A DNA stretch of 63,167 nucleotides, counting the filler, from Choristocarpus tenellus KU-1152 (lineage: Eukaryota > Protista > Phaeophyceae), in NCBI GenBank assembly GCA_964200185.2. It is 10 parts of 10 records of this genome, joined end to end, with 100 filler letters (N's around TTAATTAATTAA, not from the genome) between each part and the next. Parts side by side here need not be neighbours in the genome. Positions count along the whole stretch, not along the records: positions 28,224 to 43,962 come from CAXNAD020000936.1; 9 more parts are not named here. One strand, given 5' to 3'. Below the pieces are notes generated by a model. The model had not been told where the DNA came from, did not search any database, and saw only the letters and a list, made by a program, of their open reading frames with translations. Positions 27,404 to 44,062 of this stretch are shown here, piece after piece. Each line of letters begins with the position of its first letter. Positions within the stretch are counted from its first letter, which is position 1. Both the position numbers and the translations under genes were made by a program.

Positions 27404-28223
27404 ATTCCTCTTTTCCCTCCCCCCCCCCCCCCCCTCTCCCCTCTTTTCCCCTTCCCTCCCCTNNNNNNNNNNCCTGTTTTTGCTAATTTTTTGAACCCCT
27501 CCTTTCCCCCCCCCCCCCCCCCCCCCCTCCCATCCATCTCTCGAAACTGTTGACTACCTTTACTCCAGGCACAACTCGATCTGGCTCTACTTTCCCCATC
27601 TGGAGCTGCTGTTCCTGCTCTTTGCCTATCAGGGCGCCTCTTCTGCTGAGGCACGCATGCTTCGCAGTGGATGTGTACCTCTGGTAGTCATTGGTGCAAT
27701 CGCCATGGTGAGCTAAGCAATCCATTCAAGAGAGAGAGCTCGATGTTCTCAAGTGACAAGCAATTCTCCCCTTACCTTTTTGCTCTCGTCCATGTGAGGG
27801 TGTCTGCTTGAAATCCCTCTACAACCTCCTCCAAACATCAGCATCCCCTGACGCTCTTTTGCTCCATATTGCATTCTTGCCTCCACCTCCCCCCCCCCCC
27901 CCCTTCCCCCTTCCCCTAAGAGTCTCAGAGCCACGACCTTTGCATCATTATCTCGCTGTCCTCTTGTTCCTTGTCCTCCCTTGCCTGGCGCTACCTCGTT
28001 CGTGCGCCCATCATTTCTCACCCTCCCCCCCCCCCCCCCCCCCCCCCCCCGTTCTGTGTGGCCCCGGTTTTTTTCCCCGTGCGGGTGGCTTTTTTTTTGT
28101 TTCGCATTTTTGGGGACAAGGGGNNNNNNNNNNNNNNNNNNNNNNNNNNNNNNNNNNNNNNNNNNNNTTAATTAATTAANNNNNNNNNNNNNNNNNNNNN
28201 NNNNNNNNNNNNNNNNNNNNNNN

Positions 28224-30404
28224 CCCCCCCCCCCAGGTCGCTCATCTCCTCCCACTCCAGCTTCCACCCCCCCGACCTGATACCGCAGTGCCTGCACCAG
28301 TTGCAGCAGGAAGGCAAGCAGCTCTTCGTCAGAGGCCCTGTGAAGGGCGTCCACAGCGAAGCGACGAACAACCTCAGCTTGGAAAGTGCGCTCCCGGCCC
28401 AGCAGCTTCAGAGCATCGGAGACATCGATGGGAGCACGTTCACGCCACTGTTCCAGAAGTCCTGGCACTTGTGCCACCTCTCCCTCAACCCCCCAATCAA
28501 CAGAGAGAAGTAGTTTGGTCAGTGCCTTCTTGTCGTCAGTGAGGCAGTAGCGGAACCTCCACAGCAGGTCTTTCTCCTCCATCTTGAGATTGTCACCAAG
28601 AGCGTGGCTCGAAACGATTGCATCAATACGCTGCCGTTCATCCAGGTTCGGTTTTAGCTCAAGGTCCACCAGCCCACGTAGCTGGTCGTGAGCCAGCTTG
28701 CGATATTTTTGCTCCACAGGATTGTCCTCTTCGGTTTCATAGTCCGCAACAGCAAGAAATGCCGCTCCTCCACCAAGAACATCTCCCTCCCAGGGTGGAT
28801 TATTCCCCCCCTCCCCCAATGCTCCTGTAATAATACCCTCATGCCCTGTGGTGGGAAGCGAGGTTGAGGAAGTGGAGGTGGGGGAAGTCATAGGGGTAAC
28901 CACAAGCCCCCCTCCTGCAGCCATCGCAGTTTTAGCTGCAGCTGCTGCGACAGCACTAACCCCTGGGTAAGGTCGCTCTTCATGTATGACAGGGTGGGCA
29001 AAGTAAGGCAATTCAATCACCATGAAAGGTTTGGAACGCAGTAGGGTCTCCACTTCAGACTGGTAGGCCTTGTGTGAACGGAGCTTGGCAGGGTCTGCTA
29101 GTGCAGTAGTCAGCTGTTCAACCCTCGCCAAGGAGGCAGGGTCTAGCCAATCCGCCCTGTCCACTGCACCCAGCTGGTATTTCTCCTTCATCTGAGCGAT
29201 AAATTGCAATTCATGTGTGAGGTCTTGTTTTGGGGGGCTTCATGAAACACCTTTACACTATTAAAAAATAATTGAGCATATTTAATCATCTTCCCCCTCC
29301 ATTCTCAGTAGATACGACTGACCCAACTTGAGCGACTGCATCACAAATAAAACGAGACAAAAATTTCTGATGCTTGACCACCTCAGGACGAAAAAATCTA
29401 GTTTGTAAAACTCAGCTACCCTAACAAAATCTCACCCGCTCAAGCCTGAAGCCCCAATCTTCCGACAAGGTGCGCTCAGAGACAGAATAGTCATCCCATC
29501 CTGGGCTCCCTTCTATCTTCTGGGGCAAGGGAGGGGCGGCCGGGTCCCACACGGGCGGACACTTACTAGAAAACTGGAAGGACTGCTTCTGCAATCCCAT
29601 CTTAAGTGACCCGTTTTCGTCAAAGAAGGGCATGGTTGTGAGACCGATGAGCCTGTCCCCGACTCCCCATACAGTTATCACCTGTATAGAAAGAAGGTTT
29701 ATGGTTGTGATCAGGGTTTTGGAAAAACACAGTGTTGGACAGTAGGTCCAGGGTTTTGGAAAAAAACAAGAGTGCTAACAGTAGTGGGGTACGTAACACG
29801 GAAGAAAGCTATAGAGACCAAGCTCATGTAGATGAATATCACCAACTCACCAACTTGGTGCTCCTGGTTAGATCACGGTAGCGCAAAGGGAAGCACAGTA
29901 CGTCATCCCATATAATGGCGTGCCTCTGAGGGTCATACCGTGAAGGGGTATGAGAGCTGTACAAGTTCAAGGGACGGGTGGGATCAGAGACTGTTGGACG
30001 ATGGTACGTGCAGTTACAGGGCCTCTTATACAAATTTTCAGGAGAAACATTGTAAAAAACGGGTGCATTCACCTCAAGGGTACGATGTGCATAGGCTGCC
30101 CGTCGGAAAATACACGAGCCGCGATGACGAGCTCCTCTTCAGCAACGAGACGCTCCATCATGGCCTGAAAACCTTCTTCAGTTGCATTTCCACCAACGTT
30201 TTCTCCCCCAGCACCACTCATAATTCTTCTCCATCTTTTATCACTCCCACCATGATTCCCGACATCTCCAAAGCAGCCCAAGGGAAGCTCGAGGCGAGAT
30301 ATGCCACAACGTATCTCAAGCGGAACGGAATGACTTAGGAAGAAGCGAAGCTCTTTGAAAGCATGAAGGCCCTTGGCATCTTCTTTGAAATCTATAGCAA
30401 CCAT
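28224..30404 (-). CDS. VPS34: Class III phosphatidylinositol 3-kinase (Vps34), 5' part: C2 and helical/accessory domains; kinase domain beyond the contig break
   Basis: Exons 30404-30073, 29956-29851, 29681-29436, 29191-~28278 or the gap; motifs WDDVLCFPLRYRDL, DNPVEQKYRKL, LKPN, EKDLLWRFRY..LT..KKALTK, DALKLL, LLQLVQALRY. Confidence 0.93.
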
Positions 30405-30936
30405 TTCATCCTCCCCTAGATGTGACCCTTGAGCAGCATCGACTATACCCTTTTGTGTAACTTTGTATTTAGGTTTAGGTTGTGTTCAATGTCACACCTT
30501 GGGGAGGCCTTCTCCATATACAGATGTTGCATATTTTTCTTAAATCAACATTTATTTTATTCAACATTTATCATGAACCATCACACGTCACACATGTAAT
30601 GCACATTTTTCAACAATTTTGTCTTGATCATTGAATAACAACGAACTATATAACGAAATAAGTACGTGTTCCAGATATAAACATAAAAAAATGTATGACA
30701 CAAACAAACAGCTGTTTTTGCTGAGGGAACAAGAAAACCGAAGTGAAAGAAACCACGCAGGGTAGGTACGAGTTGTCTGTTTTCATAACCAACTTGACCT
30801 GAGCTTAAGCATTTTGTTCAAGTATCTGATAATCAGCCATCCATCGCGGAATATTTCAACCTTTCCTGAATTTGCAACGCTGTATCCTACGCTCCATCAA
30901 GACCTGCATATATCCTCCTTTACCCATTGGATGAGA

Positions 30937-33157
30937 TGAAGACAGTAAGCGGCAAGTCGAAATCTGAACGTGGAGTGCTTGGGTGGTGGTGTGTAAGTTC
31001 TGTTGCGGCTTTGGTGTGCGCAATCTACATATGTGCCGGGAATGGATATATACCTTACGTTTCGGAAGGGTGCGAAGACGGCTTGACTACATCTAAAACC
31101 TGGTGTTCTTTTGATAAGCCGAGGTGAGGAACAGGCGGGAAGACTTTACAAGGCATATTCAGAACTGAGGATGGCCTGGTCATAACTACTTGCTTTGCAT
31201 TTGTTTATGATCGGTTAAGGGCACTCTACTGGGCATCGTTAGTAGTCCTTTTATCTAACATCCTTCACGTCTCGAAACTGAGAACAGAAATTCAAGAGAA
31301 CTTTTAGACCGAGCCTTTATTATTTTTGAGTAGTGATGGTAGCAAAGGTAAGGTAAATGCCGTACAGGAATTTACTTCGGGTTGTGGGGTAAGGAGAGGG
31401 ATGGGGTGATTTCCTCTAGGATCAATTAAGTACTAGTCACACAGATTACCGCTGTACTCCGATAGTCGTGGCGCAGGTTGCTCTTGTCATCCCTTTGAAT
31501 GCTAACTCTCCCTCTCGCGCACTGTTGCTCCGCACATGACGCAGTGGCTTCCAATTTGCTGCTCCATGTGCCTGTGTGAAGGATTGCGACTCCGACCACT
31601 TTCATGTCTGTCGGGTCAATTCCACAGGCCAGATAAGAGATTTTCAGGCCCTCATGCACGACACCGAAACGGTTTATTTGGATCAGCGACTGGAGGTGGC
31701 TGACGTTCAGGCTTTCCTGTCAGTTGATAGTATGTAGAGATGTGTTCATAACATGAGCAGGAAGAGCATATGGGGGTGTGGAGTAAGTTTTTTTTTCGAG
31801 AGCTGGGTGAATGTAGATAGTCGGGTCTAGTTATGGGTTCATAAACGGTTCGGGGCAGCCTCTTTTTTTGTATTCGGAGCAGTCTGTTGAGACGAGGCAC
31901 TTCTCGCCAATGCACATATCAAAATATATACAAACAGGTATTGGTAAATGAGGGTTTAGGTTCTGATATATGAAGTGATGATGTTTTGTCCTTGCTTGAT
32001 GGTCTAATTGCCTCGCCTGTTTTTTACCTGTTGATCGGGCCTAGCGGCTCGTACTGCTTACCTTGGTTTGTGCTGGAGAGATGAGCACTTCCTAGAATAC
32101 AACCTTACATTAAGGGTTGTCTGTGATACTAAGCATTGCAGGGAAATGGGCATACGCTGAGATGTTTGGCTGGCCTTCTCGTAGTATTCCTTATGACTCG
32201 CTTGGAGCGAGGGGCACAGGGCAAAATGAAGTGTAGATTGTGAAAAGTTCGAAGTGTATTGAGTACATGTTGATGGGTGATGGTTGTGAAATAGCCGTTG
32301 ATGTTACCCTCAAGAAGATTCCTCAGTATTTATGAGAAGAGGTATATTACTGTGTGCACTTGTGCTGTAGGTCTTACAATCTACTATTGGGGTGTTCCAG
32401 TGCAAAACAAGGCGTGCACAGCAAGATAAAAGTTTTTTGGGGTCAAGTGTTTCTGTTGTTGTAAGTGGGGGGTCAAGTCAAGTGCCTATGGAGATGTTGG
32501 TATGATGGGGTGCATGCATTACATTCAGTTAGACTGCAATAGTGTGTGTTTTCATGAGGAGCAGACATACAACATAATGTGTCAAGGGTCTATCCTGTTA
32601 CCCTTGTTCTGACTTAGAGCAGCCTCATAGAGTACAAGACTGGACGAATTTGTGAAAATTGGGGAGCTGGAAATTATGTTAGTAAGTTGGGTAGAAAGAG
32701 TAAGAATGGTGACGGAATAATGATAGACTGGTTGCCACAGTAGGAGAATGCCAGAAGCACTTGCAGCATTCTATATACTTTATGCATGAAATCATTTGTA
32801 TTGCTGTTGAATATATGGCACTTTCTAACTGGCTGTGTGTCTATTCAAAAGGAATTTGTATATTTAGGTATCCCAGTCTAGGACTCTTGTTTGGTGTTTT
32901 GTTATTAGTAAACAAATGCTATACTTGGCGTGAATCAACAAGAAAAAATATATATTCTTCATATTGGATCATCTTTTCCTCGTTTGCCTGTTGTCTTCAA
33001 TGGGGTCTCTACATTATTGTCACAGTGCTACGATAAGATAAGTGAAAAACCCCTTCAGGATGAGGGTACACTTTATCGTGCATTCATGATGCATTGGGGA
33101 CACCCAGTTCAACAGCAAAGACCCACCCCTTTCCAAAGTACAGATTTGGAACTGTAA
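30937..33157 (+). CDS. Small Cys-rich hypothetical protein with N-terminal signal anchor
   Basis: Exon 30937-31123 with hydrophobic VAALVCAIYICAG, phase-compatible exon from ~31545 (SGFQFAAPCACVKDCDSDHFHVCRV...), possible last exon ~33059-33157; head-to-head with VPS34. Confidence 0.45.
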
Positions 33158-35481
33158 ATCACCTTTCCGATTGATCACATCAACCTCGAAGTTCTCTAGT
33201 TGAATTGCACTCATGATAGTACGGGTTGTAGGTTTATCATGTAGCAAGCTGTCAAGCTCTCAATACGCGCACATGCTTTTTCCTTCATCCTCCCCTGGTT
33301 CTAAGTGGTGCTTTTGAGGTATGGAAAGTAAAATTCAGACTAACATGTGAGATTAGACATCCTGGAATCCAGATGTCTATGGTCATGTATCGGGAAAGAT
33401 TTCGACAAATGAAGGTGGGAAAAGATTAATTTTTTAATCAAATTGTGTACATAACGTGAGTTGGATAATATTATCAGTTTTAAATGGAAGATTTTCATTA
33501 CGAACCCTTATATTCTCAACTTCATACACCGGTTCTGCTTGAGCACTAAACAAACTTGTAAGGTTCCAGTGTCACCTAATTTGGTATTGCCGGATGATCA
33601 AGTAGGAGAAGCAAATGAAAGAGAACAGAAAGACATTTATTGCTGTCAAGGGTCCACCAAGGACAAATGAATCCGACTTGCCATGATCAAGTGATGTTGT
33701 TCGCGATATCAATCTGCAGGCAGGTACACTGCAGATTGTAGGCAATAATGGAAGGTGTTCATACCACAAAATTATACAATTTGGAAACACACCTTACAAG
33801 AAGAGATGATCAAATAAGACCATGAAGACTGTCCTCAGCATTAGACAACAGTATGCACATCCTATCTTTAAAAAGGGAAGACTATTTGGGTAAGATTTTT
33901 TTCTGCCAAATCAGGTATTCGTAAGTATTTAGGCTGACACTCTTCATCTCTCATCCCTCAAATGCAGTCAACCCTCCTTGGTCTGAAGCTGTGGCAGTAT
34001 GTTAAAGAGGAGACGAAAAATTGTCCCTTCCAGAGCGAAATCGCTCTAGGGACATGTTCTATTAGTGGTACTAATTTGTAGTACTTCGATCATATGGAAC
34101 TAGTTAGTATCAACATGATTATGACTTTTGTAATTCTTGGGTCAAGTCGGATGAAGTCCATTTCATCACAAAATCGGTAGGAGTATAAGGTGTGTAAGTC
34201 ACACTCCTTCGTAGTTGTGTTGGAAATAATAGTTGGTAGGAATACGACCATGAATTTTTAATTCTTGTCAAATCGGATGAGAAAAAAACGACGTGAAATC
34301 TGAAGGGCAAGGACCATCATCTGGTGGTGGTACGAGTCGAAAATGATTTGCGATAGGTAGGACATATATGAAGCTATTGAGGTGTATCGAGATTGTTGAA
34401 ATGGGGTGGAAATTTGATTTCGCTGGGAAAACAAGAGTGAGTGACATTTAATGGTTTACGCAAAAAAAGGATGAGCCGTTACGCAAATAAATGTGTTTTG
34501 TCTTGATCTGAACTTACCCCCTCTCTTCTTCTCTCACCGGAACCGGCCACCACTTGCCCGTTTTCTTCCTCTTTGTCCCATCCCTCGTCGAGTGACTGTC
34601 TCCAAAGAGCCAAATTAAACAAGAGGCACACAGGTTTTGGTCGTTTTGCATTTTAAGCCACTTTTTTTATCGTCTGTGATTCACTATATAGTTGCACCAA
34701 TGAAGTACAAAGATGGATTTGAGAACGTTGGTTTCTCTATTGTTTGAAAAATTTCCACAGGATGCAGAGAACCCCCTACACGCATTTGTATAAGAATATA
34801 TATTTTTAGTCGAAGTTTTGATGTTTCTGATATGTAGTTTGATTTTGGAGATCAAAAAGGACGGAATTGCACCCTCTCTCGTTTCCATCCACCAATGTGC
34901 AAGAGATGGTTTGCCCTCCATACGCAAGCCCAACGCAAGGAATAACCTCCTACCACATGTCATGCGAGTACAAGAGGTGGGTAAAGGGTCATGAAAAATA
35001 CTGCGTAGCGTGCATTATTAGTATTATTATAGAATCATTTCAGAGTACTTTGAACATGTATACTCAAGTTGTGTTATTCAGGTGGGGCTGACAGCCAGAG
35101 CATTGTTGTGTGGGGTGACAAAATGAAGGCAAGCATAATATGCTAATAAAGAGAAAATAACACAACATGTACCACTCAACCCTAAATCCCTGTAGATAGA
35201 GGACGTCCAGCCAGAGGCGGCAAAAACACCACACAGTACGCTGCGTTTGTCTCCATCACTATGATATCCTACTACCTACGCTTTCCACACCTGGGCACCA
35301 AAGACATTCCCACAAGAACACAGTACTGCAGTGCCGTAAAACAGCTGATTCCAAAAATTGAGGATGGAGCTTTTCATTGAGGATGAGCTTGACCCAAAAT
35401 TGACTGGGATAAAGTGTCGATATGTTTTTTTTGTATTACGTGTAATCCTCATTTTTTGAAATCTGCTGTTGTAACTGCGTA

Positions 35482-35760
35482 TTATCTAGAGAGACGGCTG
35501 TGCTTGGTAGTGACTGTGTTGCCAGGAGGGGAGAGCAAGCGTTCAGATGTAGCTGGATTGGCCTTTACGGGCAAATGCTTCCACGCAACTTTCTTAAATC
35601 TCGAGCAACTCTTCATCCACCGCGCCTTCCACCATTTGAGACGACCGCCAAGCTTCTCCACCAAATTGTTCGTATCCACTGTTGCATACCACAATATACC
35701 TCCTCCGGATGATATGCAGTTTATCGTCGTAGGTGATCTCCAACCATGCCCTCTTGTGGG
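35482..35760 (-). pseudogene. hAT transposase C-terminal dimerisation domain remnant
   Basis: LKWWK...FKKVAWKHLPVKANPATSERLLSPPGNTVTTKHSRL matches WW...A...L...a.sa.SER.FS..G..vt..R.rL. Confidence 0.8.
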
Positions 35761-36544
35761 CGCTTCCCTGATCCCTATCTCGAAATAAACTTTGAGAGAG
35801 CAAGAAAACGAGAGACACCCAAGTTTTGACCGTTTTGAAGTTTAACCCATTTTTTTCAAATTTTGCACTTCATTTTATTTTAATGGATGAACTGCTAATA
35901 ATAATAACTTGAGAACGTTGATTACAGCAACACAAATAAAGTGCAGCCACACTCCCTCCTTGGTCCCTGAGATGCTCCAACTCCAACCAGTAATGTTTTC
36001 CACGTATCAGAAGGTTTGATGAAGAGAGATCATTACCTCCATACGCCTACACAGACAGACCAACCTTCAACGAAAAGCTCATGTTGCCCAGTTCGAGTGA
36101 CAGGAAGCAGGTTGCAAAAATAATAGTTTGTCGGGAAGTTGGGCTAGAGACCCAGATCGTGCGTAACTCCATCGCATCACGAACAAATAATGAGTACGAA
36201 CAGAAGGGCAAGTAGTACCACACTGCTGTACCAAACATCGGACACTGAAAGTATTGAGTGCAAACCAAGCAAAAATATCCCCGAGGGGTACTCGTCTGGC
36301 TCACATGTGTGGCATTGGGTGCAAGCAAGGGCAACTACCTCCAACAATGTCTTTGGGTATCATAGTGGAAAAGTACAGATAACGCACCTTGCCGTTGTGG
36401 CGATGTGGGGCGCAAAATTGTTTTATAGGTGTCTCTATTCTGTCTTATTTCTACCATTTGTTTACCTGGTAAAATGATCCAGATCGATTTTCCTCATCCT
36501 TTCCTCATGGTACAGTTGGCCGAACAACATAGCAGAACCCTTAC

Positions 36545-36779
36545 GAGTGAAAGTATCTTAGAGGGTACGAGTTTTGCCCTGTTTGTCCATTTGGGGCTTG
36601 TCTTTCCAGGGTTTGTTCTATACTTCGTCCTACTCCGAAATGTTTCATAGTAGGAAAAATGTTTGTGAAAAGGTGTGTTCGGAACAAGGATATTGACACT
36701 TGCTAACAAACAAAATAGTCAAAGTTACATCAAAACCGCAACATTGGATTAGGCCCCCAAACGGACGCGGCTCTACCCT
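36545..36779 (-). mobile_element. MITE family A copy lacking part of one TIR
   Basis: GAGTGAAAGTATCTTAGAGGGTACG...ggacgcggctctaccct. Confidence 0.88.
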
Positions 36780-37949
36780 AGGTTTTCCGTTTCTTGAGAA
36801 AAGGTTGAGCAGATGCAAATGAACTGCCACTCTCCACATTTGCTGTCTCTCACGGGTTCTTGTTCACCTGAGGCAACAATTTTGGCGTAACTCCCCCTGC
36901 ATATCCCCCTCCACTCTTTTGGTCTTATAATTCGTCTGGAGGTGTTGGACTTTTCAGGAAGGATAATATTTTTATAATATGTAGTTGATGAAGAAGAGTG
37001 CTGCACACTTCATGCTAATAGTGACTATTACTTGAAAGAATAAACGAAGCAACTGAAGAAAAGGAAGCTAGCTGTCAGGTCTAAGGTGTGGGACACCTCA
37101 GCAAAACACCACTCACAGCTAACTACAATCCTCTATGCTGTATGGTGCATCTATGCGCTATCAATTTCCCTCTCTGTGTACAGCTATGTTATTTTTGGAC
37201 TGCTGATCCTTAATGGGTACAATATATTAGTACTTGCAAGAGCGAATCGTTGTAAAGGACGGGAAGACGCGGAGTGATCCACAAATGAGGGGTTATCGTA
37301 TCTGGTGAGATCAATACAAACCCTAATAAAATTTTCTCCTTACATATATGTATGTACATATGCAAGTCTGGCATATACCCACACCTGTACTGGCTGCACC
37401 TGTAGGGGAACAGTCAAAAACGCCTTGTTTCACACAATCTTAGCCAAATGCAAACAGTACCTACCGACATGGTAGGGACACTCACTTTTTGTCTCTATTA
37501 CCCCTACCTCACTATCATCATACTACGTCATAAATCAATACTACGGACTTGAACGAGATAACAAGACAGGTCACCCAGAAGGTGATTCATCTATAATAGT
37601 TCAAAACCATGTGGCTCCAGGGAGGGTGGTACAAAGGAAGCATAGCCCAACACCACTTCATATTATCTATCGGCAACAGAGGCCATATATAACAAATAAT
37701 CAATAGTTCCGTTGAGCACGGAGCTAAGTTACCACAAGGCACCGATACAAAACAGGAAAAACAAATCACATAATTCATGCAGAAAGTAATAAAATCAACC
37801 TACCCACATCTGAATCCATCATGTGACATCTTGTCATTCAATTGATGAAGTTGGTGGAACTTTGGCCTTGTTTCCTACTGTTGTTTGGTCACAACCCAAC
37901 CAGTTACACATAGTACACACATCACCGTAAATCGAGAACATGCATTACA

Positions 37950-40900
37950 TCAAGGTTCAGACTGGGATCCTTCAGCCAAGGTAGCCCCATTCTCCAATCT
38001 GAAGACGACACCATCCTCAAAGGAGTTACCAACCACAAGAGTTTCTGTGGATGCATCGAATCGCATCGATTCAATGTTCAAGAAGGTGTTGTCCCGGAAC
38101 TACGCCATGATGACATTCCAGGATAGAGGTCGGTTGGCCATGGAGACAACAGAAAAGGTCAAGAGTGTCAAAAGGGGGATAACGCACAGGATATGGGGAA
38201 ACGACTAAAAACACTGCCTCATGAATGTAAGTGTAAATTAGAAGTTCAATTGTACAACTTTGGAGTTGTCCTTTGCAGCAAAATACACAAAAGGTCACAC
38301 AAGGAGTTCAAGCATTGGAGTGCATCCCTTGAGCGTACCAGGCTATCTTGAAACAAGGCTTAAGCTGATATTACCCAAGGTCAAAACACTCTGTTGCACT
38401 ACAGGTCACTTCAGTAGTACTCCAGAGGTGAATAAATTTCAATTCATATCAATTTAGAGTGAGCTGAAGCAAAGGCAACAGCTGTTGAGGAAGAAAACTG
38501 CACAAAGAAATACTTCCCCTCTCTCACCTCATCACCATCTGATTCCTTGCATGCAATGCCCTGACCCTCCAGTGGTCCATCAATGGTGTTCTCCACGATA
38601 AGGTTGTTTCTTGGGCGTCCACCGTAGCTCAAGGATGCCTAACGTAGGAACAAATCCCAATCAAAAGATTTCGCAGCATATGGAATGCAAAATGTAAGGT
38701 GAAGGCTCTGACCATGCAACAGGAGGTCTTGAGTTACTAAATTGAAATTATATCCCTTAAACCAGTGCACCCCCCACTAGCATATCAGGGGAGCTACCTG
38801 TCCCTCCCTTCGCTCAAGCAAACTAAAAAATACTTCTCCAAAAAATATTGTCGTGAAATATCAGTACACCTGGTTGAATGAGTGGCATATTGTGCCCTGC
38901 TGAAGCTTTCTAGTGTGTCAAATGCAAAGCAGACTCTCCTCTTGCTCTCCTTCCACGATGAGCTCAAATTGTGTTCCTTTCAGCTGAAAGAAAGTCTATT
39001 CCCTGCGGTTCAACTTGAAAGCTCAACCTGAACCTCACTCAACCTTTGTTTATTGACTACTGGAACTGCCTTCTGCATGAAATACTTTGTGTGAAAAAAA
39101 AAAGTCAAGTACATATACTGCGCAGAAACCCCTCACTCCTTTTGTCGCTCTTATATCGGATTTAAAGTGTGTGTTCAGAAATGATTATCTATTACTTGGG
39201 CAGAGCACACACATTAAATTTTCCACAGTGAAAATTCACTCATTGTCGCTTGTTTTGCGTGTCATTATCGCAAAGAGTACAGCACTATAGATATGTCATA
39301 GGGCTTAGGAGTGATGCCTTCATTTCACCAGAAGAAAACAATAAGCTCCCATTCTCATATTACTGCATAAACCTCTAGCACAATACAAAATAAAATTTTG
39401 TCAGAAAGACCCTATGTGTCTCAATAAACATGTAAACATTAAAAAAAAAACTGTTCCTCAGAGCTCCCTCCACTTTGTACACCCTGCAGGTGTTCTACCC
39501 TCAATGCTTCTATCGCACCTGTGGATCATCACTCCCCATGTAGAAGAAGACACCATAGCGCTCATTATTCGTCCTGTAAATTACAGAAATTAGATGCAGG
39601 TTTAATAATGTGCGGTCATGAAAAGACACCGTGATAAACAGGTTCAACAGGCTGATATCTATATATACCAAACCAATCACAAAAACTCAAGACAACACTA
39701 CATCAGAAATATCACCATGGCATTTCTTGTCCCCTCTCGTCCTCAGAGTTACTGAGACTACCACCCAACAAATACCCTTTGTTCTTTTTTACAACATTAC
39801 TCCTGCAAACTGGACTAACATCTGACCTCACTGTCCAACAGAAAATACCACCATTCACAATACCAAACTACATAAAGTGGCAGTAGCACAGCAAGATTCT
39901 TGTAAGTATTTGGTATTCCAGATGTGTTATGATTCTACTTATTGATCTATGCATAATCAACCTGATCTGTTGTAGAACAGTGCTACACAAACTGTGTAAC
40001 CAACGGCCATCTGTGCACTCTCACATCTTGTTGTTCCGAACCACATTGTCGGCAGCACCAAGGCTCAGACGCACGCCATACCTGCCCCCCTGAAAGTCAC
40101 CGGAACAGAAAAGATTGGAGGTGGAGAGCGAGATTGGGTTGGGTATGTGAGGTGGGAATTATTCTTCTATCCATTTCTATTCTCATTTATTTATACTCTA
40201 CAGACAGAAACAAGAACGCACAGGGGGATGATCTGATCAATGGAGCAAATGCTCTTGACGCATGTAGCTCCCCAAGGAGGAACATTCAATTTCTACGCAC
40301 ACAATTCACCACAGTACTATGTGTGCTATGGGTGTGAAAACCCAGTAGTGATTATGTGACCACAGAATATTCACACACAGATTTTGTATGTATCGAAAAT
40401 ACGAATTCACCTCCATGATGTTGTTGTAGATCTCAACGCCATTGCTCTCCACAATTCCAAAGTCACCTTCCTCATTTCCACGGCAGATGTTATCATAGGC
40501 AACAGCATTGTCCACAGAGCGGTGGAAAAAGATACCTGCTCGAGCATTGTTCTCAACAGTGTTGCCATGCACTACTGCGCTGGTGGATTGAAGGTGAGGG
40601 AGGAGCAATGTGGAATAGTGATTAGGGACAAGACACAATTCATCTTTTCCAAATTTACATGCATAACATAGTACAACAGCGTCATGGTACAGTGCGATCC
40701 ATGATAGGATATATTCTCTGAAGGGATTGTGAAGTTGACAATATGTAAGAAACAGTGCAGGGCAAGTCTAGCGCAAGTGCAGTTCATACCAAAAGTACCC
40801 AGTCTGAAACAGCAGCGCTTGGTCCATGTTGCACAAGATGAAGTATTTGGTAGTGCTAAGGACAACCTACTAAAGTGTCGTCCTGATTTAGTCTTGGGCA

Positions 40901-43211
40901 ACAGAAGATGGGAAGAATTTTGAGCAGGGATGTATACCAATTTAAGGTATCAAACATAAACATGATTTAAGTATTGCATCGTGTTCTGAGATGACGTGTC
41001 AAATTATTCACAGGTAGTTGAAATGACACAATGAAGTCACTCAAGAACATTTACTCTGGAATTAACTTGACAGCTGCATGTCCAAAAAATTGAATAAAAC
41101 ATCGACCCCTTACCCCAGGCAGCGCTTGGAATACTCGATACCATGCCAGCCGTTGTTGTAGACCTGAAGAGTAAGAACACAACAGCAATAGCACAATTAA
41201 TGAGAGAGGTCAGGGTTATTGTGCACTTGGCAGTATCATTTGATGCACTGGAGCTCATCAAATGAATATCAAGAACATTTCACCCATGGGACTATTGAAG
41301 ATGGCACGCTCCCAGAAGTGTTGAAGTTCAGTCCTGCACTGTATCGGCAGGGCTACATTACATTTGAGGGAACTGAGGATGACAAAGAAAGCACATGATT
41401 CAATATAAACAGTATGTAATGCACCAAAAAAGATTCAATCATGTAGTGCACTGCCATTTGCCCACGTACACCATAGAAACAGTATTGTTGTGCATAATCA
41501 GACCAGGTGTTTGTGAAGGAGCCAGTGCAAATACCACTGGATTGAGGAGATCATTTTTGAAGTTTTGTAAACTCAAGCCTCACACACAATCATAAAATAA
41601 ACTGGGATTACAGCTAGCCCTACATCAGGTACAAGCACACTGCAGTGCTTACATAGAGAAATAAGGATCTAGAACTATGGTAGCAACATAATGATCCAAA
41701 CCTTGTTCTTTTTGAGGGTCATGTAGTCGCTGTTATCTTGAGGGTTGAGGCCGTTGAGGTAGTTGTCATGAACATCATTTGTTTTCCACACACTCTCGCC
41801 CTTCATCCCATAGCAGTCTTGGATAATCGGTCAGTGCAAGGAACAGAGGAATTTATAAGCTTCTGGGTCGTATTAGTACACACCACCTAATGCAGTGACA
41901 AAAAGCGCATTACTAGTTTACTCTGTCGTACAAGCAAATTCTAGCATTTTATTCTCCGCAGTCAAGCACTTGTGACTCAGATGAAAACTATGGGTATGAA
42001 CAATATCAGCAGCCTTAACATAACCACAAGTAAGGAAGCACAAAAGAACATTTATCTCTCACATGCTCCCATATAATTGTCGTGGAGGTTGCTTTTCTTC
42101 AGCTCTCCATAGACCCCACACTTATCAAAGAGGGCCAAATCATCCGGGTCGTAAGGGTAAGGGTCACGGTCATCAAAGCCCTCCACCTTCCAAACCACTC
42201 CATAGTCGTTGTCTGAAGATGAGGAACAAGCAAAGGGTTTGGAGTTTTGGCAGAGCTCGAGGTCGATGTGAGGATGTATTGGCTAACGTTTGAGGAACTT
42301 GAAGGAGGATGATCAAACGAAACGTCAACACCCCAGCGAGCTATCCCACTCACTAATGTCATTGTGGTAGTCGCCCTCGTTTCCCACAAAGGAAATTTCG
42401 CTCTTGATTATATCCATACGAGATGCCATACACACATCACCCTCCATATAAGACAGGGCGGCGATGTAAGCCCTCCCTGCTAGCCTCGTATCAGGGCCAT
42501 TCGTTTCAGGATCGTAGGATGTAATATCTGTTTCTAAAATGGAGATCTTGCCAGGTGACGCTATAATGGATACGCTTCCAGATGGACCGCTCTAAGAGGG
42601 ACAATAACATGAGCAACAATCAGAGAAACAGAAAATGTCAATACGAATTCTGGAGACTTATCAAAGGCATTGAGTCTTAAGCGCGGGTTCCCAACGAACA
42701 AAAAATAATCGAGTGTGTGACAAATGTGTGGAGCATCACACAGTTCAACAAGGCGGGATTTTATGTTCTTCACCTTCACAACGAGTTCACGACTTCCTTA
42801 TGGGCATACCTCAAGAAGAAGTTGTTCCACAGAGTCGGTGGTCAGTCCTCCTTGGACTTTCAATACCATAGAAGGGGACTCGATCACAATGCTGTGGTGG
42901 AGTGTCCACACATCGCCATCATTGGACACTGCCACACCACCTGTCTTGTCACGGATATCCGCTAGAGTGACCTTGCAGTTATTACCACCCGTTAACACCA
43001 CGAGCTTCTCGTCCTGTTTCCACTCGATTTTGGAAGCGGCACAGGTTGATGGACTACGGCAAGTACCAGCCCTGGTCCCACCATCCTTGCAAATTTTCGC
43101 CCCACAACACTCATAATCATATTGACAAGTCTCATCCTTTCCCTGGCAAACAGCCGAGCAACCTGTGACGAGAGCAAGTATGAGGACAAGACTAAAGGCA
43201 CGACCAAACAT
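37950..43211 (-). CDS. Secreted mannuronan C5-epimerase-family (right-handed beta-helix) protein with divergent active site and an N-terminal Cys-knot-like module
   Basis: Ten exons: 43211-42810, 42591-42354, ~42212-42063, 41817-41702, ~41164-41115, ~40579-40410, ~40089-40025, ~39572-39519, ~38639-38528, ~38099-37950; signal peptide; motifs ITSYD, GRAYI, RMDIIKSEISFVG, YGVVWKV, VYG, HGIEYSKRC, AGIFFHRS, ES, YGVRLSLG, GSD, GRP..N, MRFD. Confidence 0.88.
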
Positions 43212-44062
43212 GGTGCCGTAGTATTTGTTCCCCTCTCTATACTGGTGTCTTTCTTCTTCGAAACAATGACTGACAACAAAAGTTTAAAGGTAGGATCAAC
43301 ATTGATGTGTTAATATGGCAGATCACAACAACTAGTATAAAAACGAAGAAAAGTTTCGTTGCCCAACTTAATCAAACATACAGTGCAAATGAAAGAGAAG
43401 AATCCTAATAGACCGGTATGATAGGGAGATGATAAGTTGGTACATAAATGTATCTTATCCAAATTAATACACAGTTGAATAGAACAAAACCGCAAAGCAC
43501 TATATTTACAGTATGTCTTGAAGATTACTTTTCCCCATACAAAATACTTACTCGCTCTATGATACTATGAACTTAGAAAAAACAACCACCATATCATTTT
43601 GGTTTGAATGAGTGAGGGAGAAGTTCCACAAGATCTTTCTAGTAATATATTTAAGGCTTTCTAGATCATTTAGGGTCTTGAATAGATCAATCAGCCATAT
43701 ATATAATCTAGGGTGAAGAGACGATTCGTTCAGTTTAAACCATATTCTGTTTGATAGTTCCTTCGTCCATTCCTTTTATTTTCTTGAGTAGGAAGGATCA
43801 ATGAACGCTTCTAATAAAACGGCAAACTCATGTACAGTACCTACATCTATTTTATACCAACTATTATGAACCAACCCCATTTTGGTACCGCTTTTTTCGA
43901 CATACTCAAAAAAATAGGCTTTTGTACCGGAATTCTCGTATTCGGGCGATTTGGCACAAAACNNNNNNNNNNNNNNNNNNNNNNNNNNNNNNNNNNNNNN
44001 NNNNNNTTAATTAATTAANNNNNNNNNNNNNNNNNNNNNNNNNNNNNNNNNNNNNNNNNNNN

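Follow-up and report, generated by a model that had tools for sequence, protein, structure and literature searches.

A gene placed by its sequence in the mannuronan C5-epimerase (ManC5-E) family lies on the minus strand of a window of 63,167 nucleotides from the genome assembly GCA_964200185.2 of Choristocarpus tenellus, an early-branching brown alga. The window is the whole stretch of DNA analysed, in which ten parts of the assembly are joined with filler between them, and all positions are counted along it; the gene comes from the contig CAXNAD020000936.1 (15,739 bases), whose entire record is included. The coding frame is intact, and the catalytic motif, canonically YGFDPHDDSD, reads NGLNPQDNSD. 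The gene is a maintained paralogue, the Choristocarpus tenellus orthologue of Ectocarpus MEP14, and not a decaying copy, and it has probably lost canonical epimerase chemistry. Its components are as follows.

37950..43211, minus strand: whole coding gene; 10 exons, 501 codons plus a stop, nine spliced joints, joined frame open
42810-43211, minus strand: exon 1; ATG at 43209-43211, leader residues 1-21 at 43149-43211, Cys-rich residues 22-57 at 43041-43148
42354-42591, minus strand: exon 2; N-terminal beta-helix rungs, joints 42591/42810 and 42212/42354
42063-42212, minus strand: exon 3; spliced contigs and open frame
41702-41817, minus strand: exon 4; holds the rewritten motif; spliced contigs and open frame
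41726-41755, minus strand: NGLNPQDNSD, residues 285-294, replacing canonical YGFDPHDDSD
41744-41746, 41738-41740 and 41732-41734, minus strand: motif codons N288, Q290 and N292, respectively
41114-41163, minus strand: exon 5; VYNNGWHGIEYSKRCLG, with E312 at 41134-41136 and SKRC at 41119-41130
40411-40579, minus strand: exon 6; HRS at 40516-40524, EGDFG (canonical D.GIA) at 40456-40470, D358 at 40462-40464
40025-40089, minus strand: exon 7; GGRYGVRLSLG rung, R382 kept
39519-39573, minus strand: exon 8; spliced contigs and open frame
38528-38638, minus strand: exon 9; spliced contigs and open frame
37950-38099, minus strand: exon 10; stop codon at 37950-37952

The exon structure was compared over 37900-43300 with three sequencing runs of one study (X1, X2 and X3), none of which is recorded as RNA. 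X1 and X2 give collinear genomic contigs at a depth of 6-19. The X3 contigs, at a depth of 560-940, omit nine intervals with CT..AC ends on the plus strand, that is GT..AG on the gene strand, and X3 contigs within those intervals reach a depth of only 1-10. Because the high-depth contigs skip GT..AG intervals and the intron contigs are of low depth, we read X3 as a transcript assembly: on this transcript-like pattern the gene is both expressed and spliced. Formally, the spliced contigs could also stem from a processed DNA copy; neither genomic run shows one. Four joints were moved by 1-2 bases onto canonical splice sites, leaving the joined sequence unaffected, and an independent exact protein-to-DNA mapper returned identical exons. 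The joined exons form an open frame of 501 codons plus a stop, free of frameshifts, and no base differences or indels were seen in the exons in X1, X2 or X3. An initial annotation, made from the sequence by itself, had called a ten-exon gene without stop or frameshift and had proposed that transcripts be used to check it; the frame and the joints bear out the call, and the transcript-like contigs cover all ten exons. The X1 and X2 contigs break at 39440-39480 in intron 8, both with the same 255-base loose end unmatched to the window and X2 with an extra AA after 39440, a picture that would fit either a second haplotype or a branching of the assembly graph at a homopolymer run.

The predicted protein begins MFGRAFSLVLILALVTGCSAV, with one basic residue followed by a hydrophobic core, and has seven cysteines between residues 22 and 57; its orthologues likewise begin with hydrophobic leaders and then Cys-rich linkers. 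This signal-peptide-like start suggests that the protein is secreted. The public model P0068 (387 aa, 'unnamed protein product', Choristocarpus tenellus) is 100% identical to residues 115-501, beginning at the internal Met115 (42869) and lacking the leader and the first rungs. In the interval between these two starts (42869-43211, minus strand) the transcript-like contigs, one of which extends to 43207 near the upstream ATG, and the orthologues favour the ATG at 43211 over Met115.

Searches with parts of the protein lead to a compact group of relatives. The motif exon (exon 4) matches nothing in Pfam or the PDB when used alone, and exon 6 is the only single exon to match Pfam (NosD and Beta_helix). 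A protein-representative search with the exon 2 segment (stop-free 42328-42591) returned a Cladosiphon protein, P0020, that bears the same motif and matches Pfam Beta_helix and NosD; by sequence its only match in the PDB is AlgG, with NPQD aligned to DPHD and SKR to the ISR segment of AlgG. Used as query in a word search, P0020 gave a tight set of orthologues from Nemacystus, several species of Ectocarpus, Saccharina japonica, Ascophyllum, Scytosiphon, Sphacelaria, Choristocarpus, Discosporangium and one Logan assembly, followed by an abrupt fall to 37-38% identity. Named members include Ectocarpus MEP14 (CAB1098160.1), CBJ31264.1 (UniProt D7FSX3, 'Mannuronan C-5-epimerase') and the Saccharina japonica protein QGV16393.1 (A0A7L4XTJ3, 'Mannuronate C5-epimerase'). 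The 10 orthologue entries, nine of them besides Choristocarpus, all read xG[LMI]NPQDNSD and then WHGIE[YFI]SKRC, and none has DPHD. They span Discosporangiales to Ectocarpales, at least five brown-algal orders, are 51-64% identical to the window gene, and share 145 invariant columns out of 353; there appears to be about one cluster per species.

The rewritten residues were placed in a family-wide context. The minus-strand translation of 41714-41821 is QDCYGMKGESVWKTNDVHDNYLNGLNPQDNSDYMTL, quoted in shorter form as ...VHDNYLNGLNPQDNSDYMTL, and HDNYLNGLNPQDNSDY is encoded at 41723-41770 on that strand. A second search, from a canonical Ascophyllum enzyme, added many canonical brown-algal sequences, five of them from Choristocarpus, giving an alignment of 223 homologues of which 202 have DPH at the motif site. 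Against these 202 the substitutions are Y285N, D288N, H290Q and D292N, so that the motif and the four amide replacements stand as first described, together with the retention of the basic SKRC and HRS groups. Neither NPQD nor the Glu of GIE.SKRC occurs outside the clade (0 of the 202 DPH-type homologues). Since NPQDNSD is fixed in nine further orthologue entries and absent from the other homologues collected, the change is not a chance one.

There are several aspects to the pattern of conservation at the 72 columns that we term family-invariant (conservation of 90% or more among the 202 DPH-type homologues). First, the NPQD clade keeps 53 of them, including H309, S314, R316, C317, H338, R339 and R382; SKRC (K315, R316) and HRS are invariant across both family and clade. 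Second, seven columns are switched and fixed, namely D288N, H290Q, D292N, I312E, D356E, G358D and A360G, and the resulting residues (N288, Q290, N292, E312, E356, D358 and G360) are 100% invariant within the clade. Third, the remaining 12 columns vary, including E190, E215 and Y285, the last being Asn or Val in clade members. Fourth, the changed columns concentrate at the active site: the catalytic His and the first Asp, each 100% conserved in the 202 homologues, are replaced, position 312 is Ile in 100% of canonical homologues and Glu in the clade, and the balance of active-site negative charge is two lost and two gained (I312E, G358D). These newly fixed acidic residues go beyond the initial annotation and sustain its suggestion of a different chemistry.

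An AlphaFold2 model of P0068 (residues 115-501), built with a 100-row alignment, has a mean predicted local distance difference test score (pLDDT) of 95.5 and a predicted template modelling score (pTM) of 0.94. Foldseek places AlgG at the top (E 1.3e-12), followed by AlgE6 and AlgE4. VIA-align gives AlgG a Z of 38.7, with a root-mean-square deviation of 1.7 Å over 301 residues, AlgE6 and AlgE4 a Z of 34.5-35.5, other beta-helix proteins ~30 or less, and PL6 lyases and GH28 hydrolases ~28. The predicted fold is thus a right-handed parallel beta-helix closest to AlgG and AlgE4, as expected of a family member and in keeping with the structural likeness to epimerases first noted. Rung register was obtained by aligning each helix rung with the next on its G-[IV] core and comparing the result with the strand pattern of the model; E312 would then share the strand position of N288 one rung further on, and D358 would lie on the groove-facing side three rungs beyond the motif rung.

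The meaning of these changes can be read from the bacterial enzymes, in which the DPHD His is probably the base that takes up the C5 proton, a water held by the Tyr may supply a proton, and, in AlgG, an Arg shields the carboxylate (Ertesvag 2015, PMC4444821). Given these roles, the clade has lost the base and the Tyr and has kept the basic residues. The sequence does not contain YG(F/I)DPH(D/E), the motif with the proton-abstracting His and the Tyr that marks a functional epimerase; it does contain the basic residue that neutralises the uronate carboxylate, SKRC aligning with the AlgG ISR segment at the position of AlgG Arg345.

The joined 501-residue protein was used for local blastp against the fetched proteins, for the alignments, tree and intron mapping, and for the analysis of selection. 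The tree (IQ-TREE, LG+F+G4) was built from 78 rows and 457 columns of a trimmed MAFFT alignment, with bipartitions read on the unrooted tree and support given as approximate likelihood ratio test (aLRT)/ultrafast bootstrap (UFBoot). The NPQD clade has support of 100/100 and a stem of 0.99 substitutions per site, the canonical brown-algal group 98.9/100 and a stem of 0.29, and the two together 99.6/95, with homologues from uncultured bacteria falling outside. By this placement the gene belongs by descent to the ManC5-E family, alongside the brown-algal members, and an origin by separate horizontal transfer is disfavoured, since in the tree the clade joins the canonical algal genes. Discosporangium and Choristocarpus are its earliest branches and the other members form a 100/100 group, so that the motif change would predate the brown-algal crown; on the sequence evidence, the NPQD group diverged from canonical epimerases before brown algae diversified. 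The initial annotation had raised the possibility of a clade sharing NPQD, and the change is indeed common to an entire orthologue group of ancient origin, with Ectocarpus MEP14 among its members.

Within the clade, introns are highly stable in position and phase. Discosporangium matches the window gene in both respects at all nine introns, and Ectocarpus at seven of the nine; no exact coincidence in position was found with three canonical paralogues, which argues for a very early split. The loci mapped were L002 5494-10647 (Discosporangium), L003 3001-13090 (Ectocarpus sp. 6) and L005 3001-10283 (E. fasciculatus). Ectocarpus intron 1 is ~2.4-5 kb long, and the Ectocarpus sp. 6 model differs from that of E. 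fasciculatus in the last two exons, probably through annotation.

A few bacterial relatives have other motif variants, which are independent events. P0036 (692 aa, from an ENA metagenome, bacterial-type) has TGIDLNDQSN for YGIDPHDDSD, with the catalytic Asp and His lost independently, and its C-terminus is fused to an array of GYWLVASDGGIFAFG-like repeats. P0119, P0138 and P0148, also from metagenomes, form a small long-branch group with YG[IL]APH[NQ].S, in which the first Asp of DPHD is replaced by Ala and the last by Asn or Gln; P0138 is named mannuronan 5-epimerase by the Joint Genome Institute (JGI).

Ratios of nonsynonymous to synonymous substitution (dN/dS) were estimated by the Nei-Gojobori method on exactly mapped coding sequences. 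Ectocarpus sp. 6 against E. fasciculatus gives 0.14 (433 codons, synonymous divergence (dS) 0.20), the NPQD orthologues of Ectocarpus and Scytosiphon give 0.17 (dS 1.08), and Choristocarpus against Discosporangium gives ~0.13, with dS saturated. A canonical ManC5-E compared between Ectocarpus and Scytosiphon as a control gives 0.166. The clade is under purifying selection as strong as that on the canonical epimerase, which agrees with the initial view of a maintained rather than a decaying gene. By sequence the protein fits the definition of a pseudoenzyme, in that its catalytic residues are lost yet it is under purifying selection and expressed.

It is useful to set the protein beside known systems. 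Ectocarpus MEP14 and Saccharina QGV16393.1 have the same NPQDNSD and WHGIE.SKRC, a similar length, and a leader with a Cys-rich start; the orthologues from these two genera, at 51-54% identity to the Choristocarpus protein, are filed as ordinary epimerases. The canonical ManC5-Es (Ectocarpus MEP10 and MEP12; Choristocarpus P0162, P0178 and P0240) form the sister group, with the same beta-helix domain, the 53 of 72 family-invariant columns, SKRC and HRS in common, but they are 33-35% identical, read YGFDPHDDSD and GIIASKRC, and occur in large multigene families. Structurally the closest is the periplasmic AlgG of Pseudomonas syringae (PDB 4NK6), at ~19% identity; its SR segment, with the charge-neutralising Arg, aligns with SKR of the window protein, whereas its catalytic His and Tyr correspond to Gln and Asn and its Ile to Glu. 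The A-modules of AlgE4 and AlgE6 of Azotobacter vinelandii (PDB 2PYG, 5LW3) have the same fold and the YG(F/I)DPH(D/E) motif at the same position, but belong to secreted, calcium-dependent bacterial enzymes with R-modules and an intact motif. Chitinase-like lectins are inactive homologues of carbohydrate enzymes in which the groove is kept, the acid/base residues are replaced, and the gene is conserved and expressed. Such lectin-type proteins differ in fold and substrate, and the window protein has in addition newly fixed acidic residues, which a simple conversion to a lectin does not need.

The gene itself is already known, in the sense that its orthologues are public under epimerase names. 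The Ectocarpus MEP genes were reportedly named by Fischl et al. in 2016 (Glycobiology 26:973); the literature searched for the changed motif, MEP14, four orthologue accessions and a catalytically inactive ManC5-E, which did not include that paper, yielded no mention of them. Mazeas et al. 2024 describe three orthologue groups and DPHD in all ManC5-E of their set, and Chi et al. 2017 report five groups and do not discuss motifs.

What does the protein do? That the gene is a maintained paralogue follows from the fixation of the seven switched positions, the retention of SKRC and HRS, and purifying selection. The initial annotation offered either a pseudo-enzyme or a different chemistry; maintenance with a rewritten motif holds, and the sequence does not choose between the two. 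We rank first, at about an even chance, a non-epimerising, alginate-binding, secreted wall protein built on an ancient ManC5-E paralogue. On the stem of the clade the proton-abstraction machinery was replaced (the DPHD His by Gln, both flanking Asp by Asn, and the Tyr by Asn or Val) and two new nearby acidic residues were fixed (I312E and G358D). The protein would be exported into the wall, where it would perform no AlgG/AlgE-type conversion of mannuronate to guluronate because the base and the water-holding Tyr are missing. A uronate chain could dock in the retained groove (SKRC, HRS and R382), with the isosteric amides N288, Q290 and N292 hydrogen-bonding the sugar rather than deprotonating it, and the new carboxylates may bridge protein and polymer through calcium. 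Possible roles include masking, cross-linking, sensing, or guiding other wall enzymes. Binding without turnover is placed first because amides have taken the place of acid/base residues while the binding residues are retained.

Several considerations weigh against this proposal of a binding protein. First, the replaced residues are clade-invariant and two new acidic residues are fixed, which is more constraint than the loss of catalysis needs. Second, where the groove accommodates a polyanion, added carboxylates would suit catalysis or a metal site no less than binding by itself. Third, the invariant H309 and H338 persist near the site. Fourth, the stacking of E312 one rung below N288 is derived from repeat register and the strand pattern of the model, the signal peptide was called by eye and from hydrophobicity, and the binding role is, for every member of the clade, a prediction from sequence and model.

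The closest contender, which we hold to be a substantial if tentative possibility, is that the uronate groove has been kept and the catalytic centre rebuilt for a different reaction, with alginate or some other polysaccharide of the wall as substrate. One carboxylate would have shifted by one rung (D288N with I312E) and another been added (G358D), and candidate reactions are a calcium-assisted beta-elimination through the retained Lys and Arg, or hydrolysis through the two new carboxylates. The complete invariance of the seven switched residues among proteins only 51-64% identical to the window gene argues for this, as do the loss of two acidic groups, the gain of two others, and the long stem of the clade (0.99 as against 0.29) with tight constraint afterwards. 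There are precedents: epimerases and lyases have their first steps in common, and AlgE7 does both in one site (PMC4444821), while pseudoenzymes with migrated catalytic residues are on record (PMC10211241). However, no known lyase or hydrolase motif was recognised in the protein, its nearest structures are epimerases (Z 38.7), PL6 lyases and GH28 hydrolases being more distant (Z ~28), K315, R316 and H338 occur also in canonical epimerases and so do not mark a new mechanism, and the geometry of E312 and D358 is a prediction from register. A broader claim, that the MEP14-type clade is a previously unrecognised fourth epimerase-family lineage as well as such a new enzyme, single-copy in all brown algae and distinct from ManC5-E and PL41 lyases, is possible but less likely than not.

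It seems improbable that the protein is still a mannuronan C5-epimerase with an unconventional base or acid such as E312, H309 or H338. The fold and groove are conserved, and in database records the orthologues of Ectocarpus and Saccharina go under the name of mannuronan or mannuronate C5-epimerase, but these names are automatic or homology-based and do not derive from assays. Moreover, the His and the first Asp, without exception in the 202 homologues, are both replaced, and these include the proposed proton abstractor, with the Tyr holding the proposed proton-donating water (PMC4444821) changed as well; a canonical epimerase mechanism in the clade is, from the sequence, very unlikely. That the gene is in decay, was inactivated recently, or reflects an assembly or annotation artefact might be thought from the motif change itself and from the public model truncated at its N-terminus, but the intact, spliced frame at high depth, the base-for-base match of the X1 and X2 genomic contigs to the window exons, the same motif in at least five brown-algal orders and a dN/dS of 0.13-0.17 make it extremely improbable, decay being refuted by the conservation and selection data.

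The only other called gene on the contig, at 28235-30404 on the minus strand, is a phosphatidylinositol 3-kinase (PI3K) fragment (Pfam PI3K_C2 and PI3Ka) truncated where the contig ends; it accounts for a long stop-free frame at 28175-29239, and a 37-base tandem repeat of 1.9 copies lies within its region at 29712-29784. The ~7.5 kb between both genes (30405-37949) has no called gene, no Rfam match and only short open reading frames, with a G+C of ~0.39-0.47 and a strong positive GC skew near 31700-32700.

Brown algae rely on alginate as their main structural polymer, and nothing other than epimerases and lyases is known to set its stiffness. A single-copy member that was rewritten and then frozen, and that is present from the earliest-branching order to the kelps and Ectocarpus, points to a wall function missing from current pathway maps. 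It also qualifies the published statement that all brown-algal ManC5-Es carry DPHD (Mazeas et al. 2024), and one or more of the genes in genome counts of 'epimerases' are non-canonical. Substrate-trapping mutants carry changes like the fixed D-to-N and H-to-Q ones seen here, and if this likeness holds true the protein might serve as an alginate probe of natural origin. If instead the active site has been rebuilt for catalysis, the clade would be relevant to alginate engineering and to studies of active-site migration, and a new alginate reaction, such as calcium-dependent cleavage or another modification, would be present in all brown algae.

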